A stretch of 64,000 nucleotides of DNA from Mytilus californianus (taxonomy: Eukaryota), in NCBI RefSeq assembly GCF_021869535.1, contig NW_026262581.1, forward strand, positions 121,830,001-121,894,000. The letters are read 5' to 3'. Positions 40,992 to 49,467 of the stretch are shown here, one piece after another. Every line of letters starts with the position of its first letter. The stretch's first letter is position 1. The translations under genes and the position numbers were made by a program. The notes beneath the pieces are model-generated. The model saw only the letters and a program-made list of their open reading frames with translations, did not search any database and was not told the DNA's origin.

Positions 40992-43900
40992 GTACATGTT
41001 ATGTAAGATCTAATGCAAGTAATTGTATAATCTATTATCTAGTCATTTAGTATTGGGTTCAGTGTTTTGTATCTACAATGGCAGTATTCTTCACAGGCCC
41101 TTAAAGCACCACAGATTTGGGGTATATAATTTCGGAGCATGGTCTTATCAGTGAGTGATTCTAGATATCTGGCCTGTGGTGCTATACATGTTATATCCGT
41201 CTAAAAATCATAAAATTTTATCCAACTTGATTGATGTTATATATACTTACTTACTTATAGTTACTTATAGTTGATTTCCAGTACAGGACCCCTCAAGGTT
41301 CCTCTTCACCAGACTCATAATTTAATGTTTTTCTATTACTGTTTTGTCCGTGACTTCCGGATATTTCTGCTCTGTAGTCATTATAGTATATCTCTTCGTC
41401 TGACCAAAATTTGTCTAATCGGTTTTTAAATGCATTTATTGATGGTGACTTTGTTATTTTATCTGGTAATTTGTTCCAGGTTTTAGCAATTCTAACAGAG
41501 AAAGAGTGTTTACGGATATTTGTTTTGAATCTTTGATGAATGACTTTATTACTGTTGGTCCTGCTACTGAATCTTTGTTGAGAATCATCTGCCGTTCTTA
41601 AAAATGAGCTTACTTCTTTGTCGTAGTATCCATTCATTGTTTTGAAAGTTTCAATCATATCCCCTCTTATTCTCCTATACGATAATGTTGGTAAGCCTAG
41701 TTTTTTAAGTCGCTCTGGGTAGCTCATGTCTTTGAGACCTGGTAATTGTTTTGTTACCCTTCTTTGGACACCTTCTATTTTGTCGATATCTTTTTTCCTG
41801 TATGGGGACCAGACTGAGCTGGCATAATCTAGGTGGGTTCTAACCATGGTTTTGTACAATGGCATGAATGTCTCAATTCCCAAGTACTTAAATGTTCTTC
41901 TAAGAACTGCAAATATAGAGTTGGCCTTGTTCACTTTTTCACTTATGTGATTTTCAAAGGTGAGTTCTGAGTCAATAAGGACTCCTATATCTTTTTCCTC
42001 TGTAACTTGTGCTATTGGATGGTTTAGAAGACTATAATTTGATGGTTGGTCAGTGCTATTAGATTTCTTACATATTTTCATATATTTACATTTTTCCGGG
42101 TGAAATTTGAGTAGCCATTTGTCACTCCAGGATTCCATCTTGTTAAGGTCTTCTTGTAGAATTTGTCTGTCTTTCTGGGTTTTTATTATTCTAAAGATCT
42201 TGGTATCATCCGCAAATAGGTATGCATCAGAATCCACTTGGTCTGGAAGATCATTTATATATAGAACAAATAGTAATGGTCCTAGTACAAATGTAGTACT
42301 GATCCTTGGGGTATCCCAGATGTAACGTTAGCCCAGTCTGATTCTTCACCATTCACTATGACCTTTTGTTTCCTATCTTTTAAGAAGCTTGTTATCCACC
42401 CTACTATATCTTCACTGACACCTAGATTTTTGATTTTGGCTATTAATCTTTTATGAGGTACCTTATCAAAGGCCTTCATAAAATCAGTATATATAGAGTC
42501 TATGTCTAAACCTTGATCTAATGCCTCTGTCCACTTATCAATCACTTCTAATAATTGAAGACCAGTTGACCTCCCTGCAATAAATCCGTATTGCTTTTTA
42601 GAGAATAAGTTGTTCTTTTTCATATGCTCTATAATAAATTCACGCAATATCTTCTCCATTATTTTGCATACTACAGATGTCAAACTGACTGGTCTATAAT
42701 TTTTGGCTAGTGACTTATTACCCTTTTTAAATATAGCACTTATCATAGCATTTTTCCAATCGTTAGGTACTGTCTTACTTTCAAGTGATTGATTATATAT
42801 TATACATAAAGGATTTGCCAATGATTCAGCAATCTCTTTTAGCAGCCTAGGGTGTAGTTTGTCCATACCTGGAGATTTATCTATTTTCAATGCATTTAAG
42901 TGTTTCAGCACTACTTCTTCCTTTATTTTCTGATTTGACATTACATTAGTTACTAATACCGGCGTTGGTGATGGCACTACTCCGTCAGGTTCCTTGGTGA
43001 ATACGCTGGAAAAGTATTCTACTAGTAATTTGGCCTTCTTGCTATTATCCTCCGTTTTATCTGATTTTGTGTCTTCTGGATCCAGGTGTAAATCCCCAAT
43101 TCCTTCTTTGGTTTTAGTTTTTGACTTGATATAACTCCAGATAGCTTTTGGGTTTTCTTTAGCTTTTTCAGACAGATTTTTCTCATATTCCCTCTTCAAC
43201 TTATTTACTCTACTTTTTACTTGATTCCTTATCTTATTGTATTCTTTCCTCACATCTGGGTCGTTATTATGCGTTATCTTTTTTGAGAGGATGTTTTTCC
43301 TTTTAATTTTAACTATGGTGTTTTTATCCATTGGAAAATTGTTTTTCCCTCTCCCGATTTGTTTCCTTTCTTTTGTTGGTATATATTTTTTGTCCATATC
43401 TTGAATTATACTTAAAACTGATCTCCAATTTTCGTTTATATCATTTTCTTTCTGTAGTAATTCTGACCATTTAATGTTATCTAGTTCTTCTTTTATTTTT
43501 ATGTAGTTTCCTCTATTAAATAATTTAATTATTTTTGGTTTACTTTTAATATTTGTATAGCAACTAAAGTCAAATTTCATAGTGCAGTGATCGCTTTTTC
43601 CCAGTGGACTTTGGTATTCTAAATTTGAGATCATATTTTCCTCATTTGTTAAAATCAGGTCTAGGGTATGGGGTGTATTTGTACCCCTCCATCGTGTTGG
43701 TCTTGTAACATGTTGAAATAAGAAGTTTTCTTGTAGATTCTCTAAAAATTTGTATTCATTACTTTCTGTACTTTCACCTGGTGAATTCCAACTGTCCCAG
43801 TTTATTTCAGGAAAATTATAATCTTCCATTAATAGGATATGTGAGTAGCCTTTACTACAAGCTTCAGTGGTAAGCGTATTTAATTGTTTAGTGTATTCCT

Positions 43901-46900
43901 GTGATCTGTTTGATGGTGTTCTGTATATTAGTCCTAATAATAGCTGGTCTGACTGGTTTAAATTAATCTTAATAAATAAGTTTTCTTGGAATTCTGTATT
44001 CATTTGGACCTGTGATGCGTCCAGTTGTTTATCTATGTACAATAAAAGACCTCTGCCTGTGTCAACGTCTAGGTTTTTACCAAACATGTTGTAATCGGAT
44101 ACATCGGCTAAAGAATATTCTGAAATTCCTGGTTTGTACCGATTATTTTTAGGTTTAACCTCTGTAATACCAATTATTTTTGGTTTATCGTCTCTTGTTC
44201 TTACTGTTAATTCAGGCAGCTTGTTGAATAACTGATCTGCATTTGTGTATATACAGCTTAATTTGGGTAAAACTGTAAAATTATCTGTTTTTACATTTTT
44301 AAAAACCTTTTTACCATTAAAATTATTTACATTCTCTTTTCCTCTTTTATCTTTTAGGAGTCTAGCTTCCTTAATTTGACAACCTTCCTTGCCCAAGGTG
44401 GGCCCCTTACTTTGAAATGGTAGTCCCCCGAAATCTCTTCTTCGGTTTGTCTTCTCGCTTGATCCCACAATCTTTTCTCTTGCTCTCTTTCTGCTTGGGT
44501 TAGGTCGTTACTGACTCCCACTTTTTCGTATTTTGGGTTTGTTTTTATATAATGGATGTTTCTAAATAGGGTGATCTTAGGTTCTGCACTAGGTAATTTT
44601 ACTAGGATTGGTCTATTTAGCTTTTCTTTGTTAAATTTCCCAAGTCTTTTAACCATTTTCAAATTTTCCTTATCCAGTTTTATTTTGCAGTCTGTAAAGA
44701 GCTCGTTTAGTTTTTCTTTGTCAGTATTATCTCTTACTTCTTTGCTCTCGTCATCTATTTCAGGGATCCCAAAGACGATCAGGTTATTTTCTCTTGCCTT
44801 TCTCTCATTAATTTCTTCAAGAACATTTGTTACAGTCTCCTTTCTTGTTATAGGATTGGCTGCTATATCTATCTCATTGTTTGTGGAATCGCTATCTCCT
44901 TTATTCTCGGGCTTTTGTATCTTGCTTATTTCTTCTGTTATTATGGCTTTAACTTTTTCCTCATTACAACTTTCTTCTATGATTGGTGCCTCTATTTTGC
45001 CAACTTCCTCTTGTACCATCAATTTTACCATATCGTCATTGCAGTTTTTTATTTCCTCTCTAACAATCTCCTTGACTTTATCCTCGTCACATTTATTTTC
45101 AACTGTTTTTTCAAGTAATGTAATTCTTTCCTCATAACTCTCCATTATCTGTTTGCACCTTCTTTCTATTTCAATATCGGTGACTGCATGTTGTTCCATG
45201 ACTATTCTGCATTTCCCACAAAACCACATTGCATCTGTTTTACATAGCATGCTGTATTCCGCTTTTGTTTTCTTTAGACCGGTTATGCAGAAATGTTCCT
45301 TACACCTTTGGCATTCCATAAGTTGAGCCTCTGGCTCCCTGAAGATTTTGGTACATTTTGCGCATGTCCACGCTTCATCCTCATCTTGACTTGTTTTTTT
45401 GTGACGATTTGGGGCCTGTGGTACTGTTTTTTCTGGTTGACGCCATACTTCTTACTTAATAAAAATAGGGCTTCCCTATTTTTTTTTTTTTTTTTATTAT
45501 TATTATTTTTTTTTTTTTTTTTTTTTTTACCTGGCTGAGGAATTGTATAAGGCTTCCTTACACCAACTTATTTTGTAGTACTTTATTTTATTCTACTTTT
45601 ATTTAAAGGACAAGGCTACCCTATCCTTGTCTAAAGTTCGATTTCAAATGAAGCTAGACTATCCTAATTTTGACAGGGCTTCCCTATCACGTGTTTAATT
45701 TATTTTGGGACAAGGCTTCCCCATCCGTTTGACATAAACTGCACTCTCAAATGATAGAAATAGGGCTTCCCTGTTTCCTCAATAACTATCTCTCTTTACT
45801 TATTTTTCAGGACAAGGATTCCTTATCCTCCTAAAATTTTTTAGCACTGACCTTTTTAATAAAAACAAGGCTTCCTTTGTTTTTATTTCTCCTTGTTGTA
45901 TATATTCCTTTCCCTTACTCAGAAGACAAGGCTTCCTTGTTTTCTGTTCACGTTTTAAATAAAACTAGGCTTACCTCTACGTAATAGGGCTTCCCTATTA
46001 CTTTAAAAATTTTTTCAATTTTTTTTTTTTTTAAAATTATTATTTCTCTGTTAGAATATGCTTTTTTGCTTTAAATTTGAAGACAAGGCTTCCTTGTCTA
46101 TGGAACTGAAGTACCTATCTATAGAGTCAATATTTCACTTCGTTATGTACAGAACAGGGCTTCCCTATTCTGTCTTGCCTCCCCAATAATTTACTATGCC
46201 CAGACAAGGCTTCCCTATCTGGGTTTATTATATATATATATATAATAATAACAGTTCCCTTTTACTTTATGCAACTGAAACAGGGCTTCCCTATTTCAGT
46301 GACTCCTCCTTAACAGGTTTCAGACACTTCTAGGGATAGCTCCACCATTTTGTAAACCCATAGTTTAGCTAGCGTTCTATTTGGGTGGATGCCGTCTGAC
46401 AATAACTTATAGTTTTTCCTGTACCTCACCCTGGTTTTGTTTTTGGGTTTGTTCGATATTATTTGGTCTTGTGAAAATCTGGGTGCTCTATACTTCTTAT
46501 TAAGTAATTTTAATTGACTATTATAGTAGTCTACTTGGTAGCACAGTTCTTTATCCAAGCTACTCGCTTGTGTTACTGATCTAAACCCTTTAGACTTATC
46601 AATTACTAATGCCGGGTAATGCCTCTTGTTTCTTTCCTTTTTTGTTACAATTCTGGTACCACTATACTTTTTCACTACTAAGGAGTAGTTTGATGGTTTT
46701 TTCTGATTGTTGTTTTGTTCTAATATGTCTTTATTTTTCTTCCCTTCTCTGATTGTTTTATTAAATGTGGAGATTGAATAATATGGGCATTCAAGAAAGA
46801 TTATAGTGACATATTTGAATCTTGTAAGTATTTTGTCTCTTAGTTCTCTATAGCCTGTTAGAATTGACTCTATATTTTGATAGGGGTAAATTCTTAGGTA

Positions 46901-49467
46901 TGTGTATTTTCCCTTTGTGGTAATCTCACAAGTTCCAAACCAGATTAGAATAATTGGGTCTTTTTGTTTCAGTTCTTCTAGTTTTGCAAAGAGGTTTTTT
47001 AAGTGCTCATCAGTGGTGGCTGTAGTTCCGCTCTTGGCTATTATGTGGAACTTGTCACGGACGCTGTCTGGGACCACTTTATCTACACTAAACCCCTTGC
47101 TGTCCGTGAAAAGCACGGTTTCTCTTGAAAGGCCCTGCCTTTTAAATAGGTTATAAACCCTTTTGTATTCTTTTATTATCTTGTTCACTGACATGAATTT
47201 CTATTGCTTATGCAATGTCAAAATTCGGATATACAAAATTTCAATTTCAAAATAAAAAAAAAAAAAAATCCAATATGGCGGCAACAGGCCTAGTGTCAAT
47301 GCACAATTTTCAAAGAGGATTTTTCACTATTCGTCAGTAATTAATCCACATTTACATTTATATACAGTTATTTATGGCTTATTTACTGAAAATATTTGAC
47401 TTATTTGACAACTGACTCACAAAAACACACAGAAAACTTATCTTTTTTTGACTTTTTGCAGGAGCAGAAAAATCTTGACCATGCCGACCGGAACCAAAGT
47501 TGGTTTCCATTCTCTATATATAAACTTCTCTAATATATGTTTTTATTATAATTATTCTTGATATAACTTCTAATAAAATCGTAATCAACATATTAAATGC
47601 CATCAGATATACTACATAGTCATCCCTTCTCATTAAAGGTGATAAAATGATTTTAATATAAATATTTTACATTGAAAAATAATATATTTAATATGAAATA
47701 TTAATATAAATGTTTAAGATATTAAAAACAATATTTGAATAAATGTTTTCACCAATGAATATTATATTTGAATATGTGTCGGAAGCACGATTTTTGATCC
47801 TCCACCTTTGCTGTTGGTCATAAAATTCATTAATAATACATATAATTTATATCCCTTTTAATTTTTCATGCCCCCTCTGTAGCAGAGGGGGCATTAAGTT
47901 TTACCCTTGTCCGTCCGTACGTCCCAAAGTTGGTTTCCATTCTCTAACTTAAGTTTGCCTCAACCAAAGGTTATGAAACTAATACAAAATGCTTATTACC
48001 ACAAAACACAGATCAAGTTTGAAGTTTGGTGGCGTCACTTTAATCGTTCTAGAGTTATGCCCCTTTATAAATGGAAAAATTGCTGAATTTTTCATTTCCG
48101 TTCTCTCACTTAAGTTTGCCTCTACCAAATGTTATGAATCTTATACACAATGCTTATTACTACAAAACAGAAATTGATTTTGAAATTTTGTAGGCATCAC
48201 TTTTACCATTCTAGAGTTATGCCCCTTTACAAATGGAAAAATTGCTGAATTTTTCACTTCGGTCTCTCACTTAAGTTTACTTAAGTTTTGCTTAAGAAAC
48301 TTATACAAATAGATATAAGAAGATGTGGTATGAGTGCCAATGAGACAATTCTCCATCCAAGTCAAAATTTATAAAAGTAAACCATTATAGGTCAAAGTAC
48401 AGTCTTCAACACGGAGCCTTGGCTCACAACGAACAGTAAGCTATAAAGGGCCCCAAAAATTACTAGTGTAAAACCTCTCAAACGGGAAAACCAACGGTCT
48501 AATCTATATAAAAAACGAGAAACACTTATGAACCACATCAACAAACGACAACTACTGAACATCAGATTCCTGACTTAGGACAGGTGCAAACAAATGCAGC
48601 GGGTTTAAACGGTTTAAAGGTACCAAACCTTCACCCTATTAAGTCTGAAACAATATTGTAACGTCACAACATAGAAAGACACACTATAAAATATCAACTG
48701 AAATAGCTTAACTCAATCAAAGGACATATTAACACCAGTGAACATACACTGAACAAATAAATATATAAATGCTTATTACCACAAAACTCAGATCAAGCAC
48801 AAATTTAGGTAGCGTGACTTTTACTGTTCTTGAGTTATGTCCCTTTATAACGTTATATGCAAGGGTTGGCATCATTTGTGTCCCATGGACACATTCCCCA
48901 TTTATTTTGTCATGGTCTGTATCTTAGATACTATAAGCAATATGTCAATTATGTTTGGTGTGTGGAATGGTTGTAAGATGTACATGTCTGACTGGCAGGT
49001 TTTATCTGACCTTGACATAATTTCCATGGTTCATGGGTTTTGCTCATTGTTGAAGGCTGTACGGTGACCCATGGTTTTTATACGCCCATTTACGGGACAT
49101 ATTATGGTATACTGTTGTCCGTCTATCGTCAACATGTCGGACAATAACTCAAAAACGCTTTAACCAATTTGCATGAAACTTTGGTGAATTGTTTATATCT
49201 ACATGTATTATAATAACATTCCTTTAGTTTTTTTAAATTTCTGATATGACATTGAGTAGTTATGGAACTATATTCTTTGAAAAAGAGACGGGCGTATCAT
49301 GCGCTCATGGCACAGCTCTTTATTAACTTCTATGTCATTTGGTCTCTGGTGGAGAGTTGTCTCGTTTGCATTCATACCTCATCTTCTTATTTTTACATTC
49401 ATTGGACAATGCTTAGTTTTTATACGACCGCAAAAATTAAAAATTTTTTGGTCGTATATTGGTATGA

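Follow-up and report, generated by a model that had tools for sequence, protein, structure and literature searches.

Why does a long interspersed nuclear element (LINE) of the mussel Mytilus californianus carry a row of RNA hairpins between two of its open reading frames (ORFs)? The element is about 6.2 kb in length and lies on the minus strand of a 64,000-nucleotide stretch of DNA (the window; assembly GCF_021869535.1, contig NW_026262581.1, positions 121,830,001 to 121,894,000). In the sense direction it is composed of ORF0, which encodes a predicted esterase, a spacer that contains the hairpins, ORF1, and ORF2. A first-pass annotation, made from the letters of the window alone, had described the row as a selected RNA structure of the sense strand that is linked to the LINE, and the analysis presented here agrees. 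Since the stems covary, the mismatches are asymmetric with respect to strand, and the hairpins are conserved in families whose esterases are 31–52% identical and whose linkers cannot be aligned, the spacer is considered to hold an array of RNA hairpins that is under selection on the sense strand and is part of the LINE, with a probability of roughly 0.9.

The hairpin array

The spacer between the ORF0 stop codon (TAA at 46312–46310) and the ORF1 ATG at 45446 is 861 nt in length and contains exactly 14 triloop hairpins, all of them in the sense orientation (45461–46300, minus strand). The hairpins share the core RGG-AAG-CCY, are spaced 37–99 nt from centre to centre, and are separated by A-rich linkers. 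Both the count and the limits agree with the first-pass annotation: the first stem begins 9 nt past the ORF0 stop (46300) and the last stem ends 14 nt ahead of the ATG (45461). The loop is AAG in twelve hairpins, AAU in one, and UAG in one, corresponding to the cores GGAAGCC, GGAAUCC, and GGUAGCC. While the shared GG-AAG-CC core and its two loop variants were thus described correctly, the conserved part is longer and comprises about 13–15 nt. The contiguous stems range from 4 to 12 bp, or from 8 to 12 bp if one mismatch or bulge is allowed, and the free energies of the individual hairpins range from -8.2 to -17.3 kcal/mol. The earlier count of 12 G.U wobbles on the sense strand was reproduced in the contiguous stems, and hairpins 6 and 9 are each interrupted by an A.C or C.A mismatch (two in all).

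Beginning at the ORF0 end, hairpin 1 (46274–46300) has 12 bp with an AAG loop, one U.G pair, and a free energy of about -16.5 kcal/mol; its lower stem, AAAUAG/CUGUUU, is found again in families B, D, and E of the related LINEs described below. Hairpins 2 (46199–46223, two G.U pairs) and 3 (46149–46173, one U.G pair) have 11 bp each, while hairpins 4 (46081–46099, 8 bp, of the ACAAGG/CCUUGU type) and 5 (45981–46001, 9 bp) are Watson-Crick throughout. Hairpin 6 (45920–45946) is made of 6 bp, an A.C mismatch, and a further 5 bp. An RNAfold calculation for hairpin 7 (45858–45887) gave approximately 13 bp in two segments around one bulged A, with a contiguous core of 4 bp. Hairpin 8 (45809–45829, 9 bp) presents the AAU loop variant, and hairpin 9 (45752–45781) consists of 4 bp, a C.A mismatch, and another 4–5 bp. 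One of the two AUGs of the spacer is held by hairpin 10 (45708–45726, 8 bp, three G.U pairs), which is followed by hairpins 11 (45671–45689, 8 bp, one U.G pair), 12 (45606–45628, 10 bp, loop variant UAG), and 13 (45545–45563, 8 bp). Hairpin 14 (45461–45483, 10 bp) obtained the top score, 37.7 bits, from the covariance model described in the next section. All of these coordinates refer to the minus strand.

The linkers are 47% A and 26% U and are mostly unrelated to each other, as had been claimed. Their A-richness alone is not special because the whole element is 42–43% A. The direct-repeat families in the spacer are all centred on a hairpin, and the linkers contribute one faint 20-nt similarity only. 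Tandem Repeats Finder (TRF) identified no periodic array in 45461–46300, so the spacer is not an ordinary tandem repeat or minisatellite. Some of the sense-strand linkers (45484–45535 and 46008–46032, minus strand) contain A runs of 13 to about 24 nt as well as (AAU)n, and the lengths of these tracts vary among the copies in the window, M. coruscus, and M. edulis.

Folding, covariation and strand preference

A chance origin of the array is excluded. Across the 64 kb, the heptamer GGAAGCC occurs 12 times in the spacer, twice elsewhere on the same strand, and not at all on the plus strand. The spacer contains 13 stems of at least 7 bp, compared to 2.4 ± 1.5 in dinucleotide shuffles, and its minimum free energy of -233 kcal/mol may be compared to -161 ± 7 kcal/mol in the shuffles (z = -10.0) and to -196 kcal/mol for the antisense spacer.

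The analysis of covariation and the covariance model were both based on 38 ungapped hairpins from three families. The rows of this alignment are paralogous repeats, with neither the cells nor the 38 rows being independent events. Of the cells, 80.7% are paired versus 65.5% with the partners shuffled (reached by 0 of 500 shuffles) and 26–51% with the partner slid. Cells that changed on both sides number 99, where 43 were expected, and compensatory changes are present in 10 of the 12 pairs. The view that the outer stems vary and still remain complementary is therefore upheld. The covariation score was 0.46 in comparison to 0.21 for the control. At stem position 7, GC was found 11 times, AU 10 times, and UA 7 times; position 3 switches between G-C (21) and A-U (8) with three G.U pairs; and position 5 switches between U-A (19) and C-G (2) by way of U.G (9), with a single C.A.

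On the sense strand, stem positions 1–6 contain 15 G.U pairs and only one A.C. From this excess it follows that the intermediates tolerated only in the sense RNA prevail. The pattern of pairing and covariation repeats in each of the three families, and a further family (D) adds an independent and even stronger strand signal. Compensatory pairing, strand specificity, and conservation over diverged flanks, which are the general features of a conserved structured RNA, are all present.

It is at this point that a role at the level of DNA may be considered, in which the cores would be palindromic transcription factor sites that make up an internal promoter or enhancer for an ORF1–ORF2 transcript. 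Arrays of short conserved motifs are typical of transposon promoters and enhancers, the core includes GGAA, and the depletion of AUG described below would also suit the 5' untranslated region (UTR) of a subgenomic RNA. However, a site in duplex DNA needs no complementary outer arms of variable sequence and up to 12 bp in length, and its mismatches would be neutral with respect to strand rather than asymmetric. In addition, the variants with a bulged A retain the helix register and the hairpins of family D are found on the sense strand only. A DNA-level element is thus regarded as very improbable.

When the covariance model was applied to the 64-kb window and to the ORFs and flanks of the relatives, the matches were the hairpin copies listed here and no others, with scores for the antisense strand that were 10–18 bits lower at the same sites. 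The model (R1) identified no copy in the 3' UTRs. A search of 41000–47700 on both strands against Rfam 15 (cmscan, E ≤ 1) produced 0 matches. As a simple DNA pattern, two cores in succession matched 24 times in bacterial and archaeal genomes and three times in IMG/VR; two of the bacterial matches (L015, L018) were inspected, and both are unrelated to the LINE hairpin. In these contigs, the 11-mer AGGGAAGCCCT recurs at a spacing of 30–60 nt, once in coding repeats of Ruminococcus and once in an Acidobacteria metagenome-assembled genome, where it forms part of a tandem repeat that is rich in GC. Processing of the array by an RNase III-type enzyme (Dicer or Drosha) is unlikely, as stems of 6–12 bp would be too short.

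The canonical hairpin in related LINE lineages

The DNA of related elements was fetched around homologues of ORF0. The first-pass annotation had named other genomic copies and a covariance model search as a suitable check, and from both it is evident that the pairing and the loop are kept and that the array is linked to related LINEs. At least five further LINE lineages with an ORF0, whose esterases are 31–52% identical, contain 4–15 copies of the core AUAGGG-AAG-CCCUAU, and none of these copies is in the antisense orientation. Since about 13–15 nt are conserved in sequence (AUAGGG AAG CCCUAU/GU), the hairpin is a sequence-specific motif and not a structure alone.

Family A is represented by M. 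coruscus (L001) and M. edulis (L002), which have an array of 14–15 units that is orthologous to that of the window. Family B comprises an apparently intact element of 5.8 kb (L003) and a copy in M. edulis (L004), with esterases that are 44% identical, or 37% in the case of the truncated L004. In this family, 10 hairpins are located in a spacer of 567 nt and one more in the 5' UTR. This additional hairpin (L003:112–140; L004:6885–6913) is canonical and precedes the ORF0 ATG by about 100 nt; unlike family B, the 5' region of the window contains no 5'-UTR hairpin. Family C (L008–L011; esterase 45% identical) has eight hairpins and originates from hydrothermal vent and plume metagenomes, PRJEB15554 being the plume metagenome.

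Family E (L005, L006, and L007; esterase approximately 32% identical) presents the core on a stem that is both longer and bulged, GUGAAU-A-AGGG AAG CCCU-GUUCAC. A scan of metagenomes with an esterase profile yielded one locus only, which was L007. The spacer of L005 contains five copies, two of which are degenerate. That of L006 is 83 nt in length and contains a single copy with the ORF0 stop in its 5' arm. Three further hairpins of L006 (1817–1846, 2924–2953, and 3167–3196) are located within its ORF1 of 777 amino acids, all in the same frame and each encoding the peptide VNKGSPVH; here, the coding sequence itself contains a structured RNA motif. Lastly, a contig from the TARA-ocean collection (L044) has the canonical core on a bulged stem of 12 bp.

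Every canonical copy, whether it belongs to family A, B, C, or E or to L044, is on the sense strand. In a tree of ORF0 proteins, the canonical hairpin occurs on both sides of the midpoint root, at a distance of about two substitutions per site. The linkers of different families are unalignable and have only low-complexity words in common.

Derived hairpin types

Two families depart from the canonical type. Family D (L012 and L042), a well-supported clade in the ORF0 tree, retains a single hairpin that resembles the canonical one, located at the ORF0 stop and bearing the loop AUGC in L012. The 22–26 hairpins that follow are of a different type, NNNN-AAUAR-loop-YUGUU-NNNN, in which the loop varies and a U.G wobble is obligatory (L012:1791–2665; L042:1022–2539, sense). 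The basal pairs of this type covary (in L042, C-G 12, U-A 10, and A-U 2). The hairpins are also strongly biased to the sense strand, with 24 sense versus 4 antisense in L042 and 22 versus 4 in L012, and the motif itself occurs 26 and 22 times in sense and 0 times in antisense. The derived array of L012 is a regular 37-nt tandem repeat (TRF period 37, 23.6 copies) and that of L042 is aperiodic. Several of the 5' arms in family D include AAUAAA.

In family F (L043:981–1287), the spacer contains three to four copies of UACUG-AU-GGG UAUAA CCYGC-CAGUA, in which the lower stem pairs CUG with CAG. The ORF1 of L043 is unrelated to the ORF1 of the other lineages by BLAST. As both derived types are found at the same site, an array of hairpins past ORF0 characterizes the clade as a whole, and the type of hairpin can be replaced. 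Hairpin types that are specific to a family would also fit with a partner that co-evolves.

Evolution of the array

Recent duplications of a hairpin together with its linker are visible in three families: L001 and L002 have an extra unit, units 5 and 6 of L003 are duplicates, and so are units 6 and 7 of L009. From these examples and the tandem repeat of L012, it follows that duplication makes the units, the linkers drift, and selection keeps the hairpin only. The claim that simple tandem duplication could not produce such a pattern has therefore to be divided. The array in the window is not periodic, in agreement with the claim; however, units have been duplicated recently in the relatives and L012 is a plain 37-nt repeat. 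Copy number, spacing, and linkers all turn over by tandem duplication and decay, while the motif persists and continues to be present in multiple copies.

A process of this kind might run without any benefit to the element. If the palindromic core promoted template switching or slippage in the course of reverse transcription or replication, units would multiply as self-propagating, neutral by-products, and both the recent duplications in three families and the regular array of L012 could be taken this way. Small palindromic elements are known to spread in frame in other systems, which the in-frame copies in the ORF1 of L006 recall. Drift, however, would not hold a core of 13–15 nt and an invariant, asymmetric loop over approximately two ORF0 substitutions per site as the linkers randomise, nor would it favor U.G over C.A by 15 to 1 or maintain the pairing of outer stems that vary. 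This explanation is considered very improbable.

Position of the array relative to ORF0 and ORF1

The array is always situated between ORF0 and ORF1, where it brackets the stop codon of the former and the start codon of the latter. The first hairpin either overlaps the ORF0 stop or follows it by 0–23 nt in six of the eight lineages checked, and in L006, L012, and L042 the stop codon is located within the 5' arm of that hairpin. In the TARA lineage, 140 nt separate the stop from the first recognizable hairpin; in L043, the distance is about 40 nt. At the other end, families A, B, and D have their last hairpin 14–25 nt upstream of the ORF1 AUG. Apart from the 83 nt of L006, the spacers are 305–1516 nt in length. 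Readthrough of the ORF0 stop codon was rejected, given that the spacer is closed in all frames.

This arrangement would suit a translation device by which ribosomes reach ORF1 on the same RNA as ORF0, begin its translation, and proceed to ORF2 thereafter. The route could be long-range reinitiation or shunting past the ORF0 stop, or else a modular internal ribosome entry site (IRES) made of hairpins in A-rich linkers. The composition of the linkers is consistent with such a device. On the sense strand they are depleted of AUG by approximately 2.6-fold in four independent families (13 observed versus 33.9 expected, or 1 versus 7.4, 3 versus 5.8, 2 versus 5.5, and 7 versus 15.2 by family) with normal numbers of control triplets, and the AUGs that remain start very short ORFs. 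Against this, ORF0 is itself mildly AUG-poor (6 observed versus 10.6 expected) and a requirement for structure alone would not call for a conserved loop sequence. L006 has three of its four copies within ORF1, and one copy of family B is found upstream of ORF0; as these would be useless for the initiation of ORF1, they argue against an exclusive role in initiation. While termination-reinitiation signals and IRES elements of this kind have a stop and restart that overlap or are within a few tens of nucleotides of each other, the spacers here separate them by 83–1516 nt. To our knowledge, there is no precedent for reinitiation after an ORF of 220–330 codons over a distance of 0.5–1.5 kb. A translation device is thus considered doubtful, although it is the foremost alternative to the binding platform proposed below.

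The hairpins might alternatively shield the RNA from surveillance. Together with bound proteins, they would make the ORF0 stop look normal and spare the polycistronic RNA, which has more than 5 kb of apparent 3' UTR behind that stop, from nonsense-mediated decay. In Rous sarcoma virus, a stability element after the gag stop protects the RNA from the same pathway. The close proximity of the first hairpin to the ORF0 stop in most lineages, including the three in which the stop is part of the 5' arm, would be expected of a shield, and the linkers are A-rich with long A runs. Yet a shield leaves the 8–26 copies distributed over up to 1.5 kb unexplained, as it does the copies within ORF1 and in the 5' UTR, and it would not be served by a first hairpin as distant from the stop as that of the TARA lineage (140 nt) or L043 (about 40 nt). 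This role is considered improbable.

Proposed mode of action

The explanation that is favored, although at slightly less than even odds, is that the array acts as a multivalent protein-binding platform for the assembly of the LINE ribonucleoprotein (RNP). The spacer is a cis-acting element of the LINE sense RNA in the form of a row of short hairpins; in each, a G-C clamp over a lower stem of A-U and U.G pairs displays the AAG triloop, which is invariant (consensus AUAGGG-AAG-CCCUAU or -GU). Each hairpin may then be a sequence-specific site for a protein, for which the most economical candidate would be one that is encoded by the element, and the many copies would supply avidity. A newly made protein might be captured on its own RNA just past the ORF0 stop and nucleate the retrotransposition RNP in cis, which is conceivable because the array starts 0–23 nt past that stop in most lineages. 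An invariant and asymmetric loop, a G-C clamp, flexible spacing and copy number, and hairpin types specific to a lineage all fit with a protein-binding site that is used multiple times. The hairpins inside ORF1 and in the 5' UTR also favor binding.

Several observations weigh against this proposal. ORF1p is the usual RNA binder of LINEs, but the type of hairpin does not track the architecture of ORF1. Families A, B, C, and D share an ORF1 of the PHD type, yet the hairpin of D is derived; in family E, the ORF1 is unrelated and the hairpin is canonical. As a result, ORF1p is not an obvious partner. If the partner is encoded by the element, ORF0p and ORF2p, which are the proteins common to all lineages with the canonical hairpin, would be better candidates. 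A pure binding platform also does not predict the depletion of AUG in the linkers on the sense strand (13 versus 33.9 expected). The sampling matters as well: every locus was located through ORF0 homology, so the link between ORF0 and the hairpin is in part a sampling effect, and the divergence of the lineages, some of which are metagenomic or Logan contigs, rests on the divergence of their proteins and not on a host phylogeny.

A more specific form of the binding platform may be suggested with considerable reserve. The hairpin and a protein encoded by the element could form a private operator-protein pair that gives each lineage a cis or self preference over competing LINEs. Under that premise, and with equal reserve, the types found in family D (AAUAR/YUGUU) and family F (GGG-UAUAA-CCY) might be specificity switches that co-evolved with the protein. 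If true, no natural RNA tag system with multiple copies would have been described before in a non-LTR (non-long terminal repeat) retrotransposon. Such a pair would provide a direct experimental handle on how a LINE RNP chooses its own RNA, and it might also be of use for RNA tagging as a new, orthogonal combination of hairpin and protein.

The array bears on two open problems, namely how LINE proteins find their own RNA (cis preference) and by what means translation reaches the ORFs farther downstream when a LINE RNA is polycistronic. Most of the evidence comes from mammalian L1, which is without an obvious internal RNA signal. The present clade of invertebrate LINEs has an unmistakable and strongly conserved hairpin that can be mutated in its loop, clamp, wobble, and copy number, and its candidate partners are few, so that experiments on binding, translation, and retrotransposition are straightforward.

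The host LINE

ORF0 (46310–47194, minus strand) encodes a stand-alone protein of 294 amino acids, which shares 95% identity with a protein of M. coruscus and 87% with one of M. edulis. No match was found in Pfam or in a sequence profile search of the PDB. An AlphaFold (AF2) model with a predicted local distance difference test (pLDDT) score of 79 was searched with Foldseek and matched the GDSL/SGNH hydrolases 3p94, 4iyj, and 1yzf (E of approximately 1e-4). An alignment of 17 sequences identified Ser32 in a TDSKG block, Gly56, and Asp267-x-x-His270 as conserved. Given the match of the predicted fold and the conserved Ser, Gly, and Asp-x-x-His residues, the label of a putative SGNH/GDSL-fold esterase stands.

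ORF1 (44354–45446, minus strand) is predicted to contain a PHD-like zinc finger and a coiled coil. The broken ORF1 of the window has no Pfam match at E ≤ 0.01; it shares 45–50% identity with its counterparts in families B and C, the latter of which is matched weakly by PF00628 (PHD). While the spacer does end at an ATG at 45446, as first annotated, the reading frame that it opens terminates after 21 codons owing to a frameshift in a homopolymer A run (45380–45446, minus strand). ORF2 (41293–44468, minus strand) combines an apurinic-type (APE) endonuclease and a reverse transcriptase (RT), with Pfam matches to Exo_endo_phos_2 (1.7e-14) and RVT_1 (9e-18). It is split at 42237/42282 (minus strand), just ahead of the region of the RT active site. 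With a frameshifted ORF1 and a split ORF2, the copy in the window is defective. On the basis of its domain content, an APE endonuclease and RT in ORF2 with an SGNH esterase and a PHD finger upstream, the element is provisionally named a CR1/L2-lineage LINE.

On the plus strand, an ORF of 193 amino acids runs antisense to ORF1 (44556–45137). Its sequence is of low complexity and rich in S, L, and F, and the ORF is in all likelihood a side effect of the A-richness of the sense strand.

The 3' UTR is short (41244–41292, minus strand) and contains tail repeats of 10 nt and 4 nt. Families A and B share a small hairpin, GGAxCC...GGxUCC, around the ORF2 stop (41244–41310 of the window, minus strand; L003:5600–5660), downstream of which are two 10-nt repeats and GTAA repeats. 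This segment is probably the 3' recognition and tail region, and the sequence of its hairpin differs from that of the array hairpin. A role for the array in recognition by the RT of the type that occurs at 3' ends was rejected on account of this difference and the internal position of the array.

Comparison with known systems

As the first-pass annotation had supposed, no described LINE with such an array was found in Rfam or in the literature searched. Neither a hairpin array in a LINE spacer nor a stand-alone esterase ORF has been described in that literature, a provisional result since most subscription journals lay outside the search. A cis-acting structured RNA array would thus be new for non-LTR retrotransposons, again provisionally.

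CR1/L2 LINEs carry an ORF1 of the esterase type or of the PHD type (Kapitonov and Jurka 2003, cited in PMC4120745; PMC3905857). In the elements described, the esterase is a domain of ORF1p, and that type was found only in subgroups of vertebrates (PMC4120745). Neither of the two papers on esterase-type ORF1 (PMC4120745, PMC3905857) mentions a hairpin or a tandem repeat. The LINE of the window resembles this group in its SGNH esterase, PHD finger, coiled coil, APE-RT ORF2, and short 3' UTR with small tail repeats. Unlike the CR1/L2 LINEs described, the esterase of the mussel element is a separate upstream ORF that is followed by a hairpin spacer.

The array has features in common with viral packaging signals, examples of which are the alphavirus nsP1/nsP2 stem-loops with a GGG loop, the AA-bulge repeats of mouse hepatitis virus (MHV), and the dispersed coat-protein stem-loops of MS2. 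Both consist of several stem-loops on the sense genomic RNA that share a small conserved motif on variable stems, and both are located partly in coding sequence. Copy number and spacing are flexible in each, and avidity for a self-encoded RNA-binding protein is presumed. Packaging signals are likewise built of repetitive structural motifs (PMC8206606). In contrast, the host of the array is a non-LTR retrotransposon without a capsid, the array lies between ORFs, and its AAG triloop is closed by a stem that is conserved in sequence.

LINEs of the stringent type, such as UnaL2 of the eel and the L2 type of zebrafish, have a 3' stem-loop that is recognized by their own reverse transcriptase (PMC3747384). 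Like the array hairpin, it is a short and conserved hairpin of the sense RNA that serves as a cis signal for the machinery of the element. The stringent stem-loop is single-copy and 3'-terminal, whereas the array is internal and has 4–26 copies.

The UAAUG overlap of SART1 with its downstream structure and the termination upstream ribosomal binding sites (TURBS) of caliciviruses are termination-reinitiation signals that act over a few nucleotides. They share with the array an RNA structure beside a stop codon on a polycistronic eukaryotic RNA. Unlike these signals, the array has the next start codon 83–1516 nt away and repeats its structure many times.

In overall design, the array may also be compared to the A-repeat of Xist and the roX-box stem-loops of the long noncoding RNAs (lncRNAs) for dosage compensation, which present about eight conserved GC-rich hairpin cores among variable U/A-rich linkers as a multivalent platform for proteins. 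In these as in the LINE array, the units derive from tandem duplication and only the core is conserved. Xist and roX are host lncRNAs that act on chromatin, while the LINE array is part of the protein-coding mRNA of a retrotransposon. Structured RNA arrays of the kind seen in viral packaging signals and Xist can thus arise and persist in retrotransposons by a cycle of duplication and selection.

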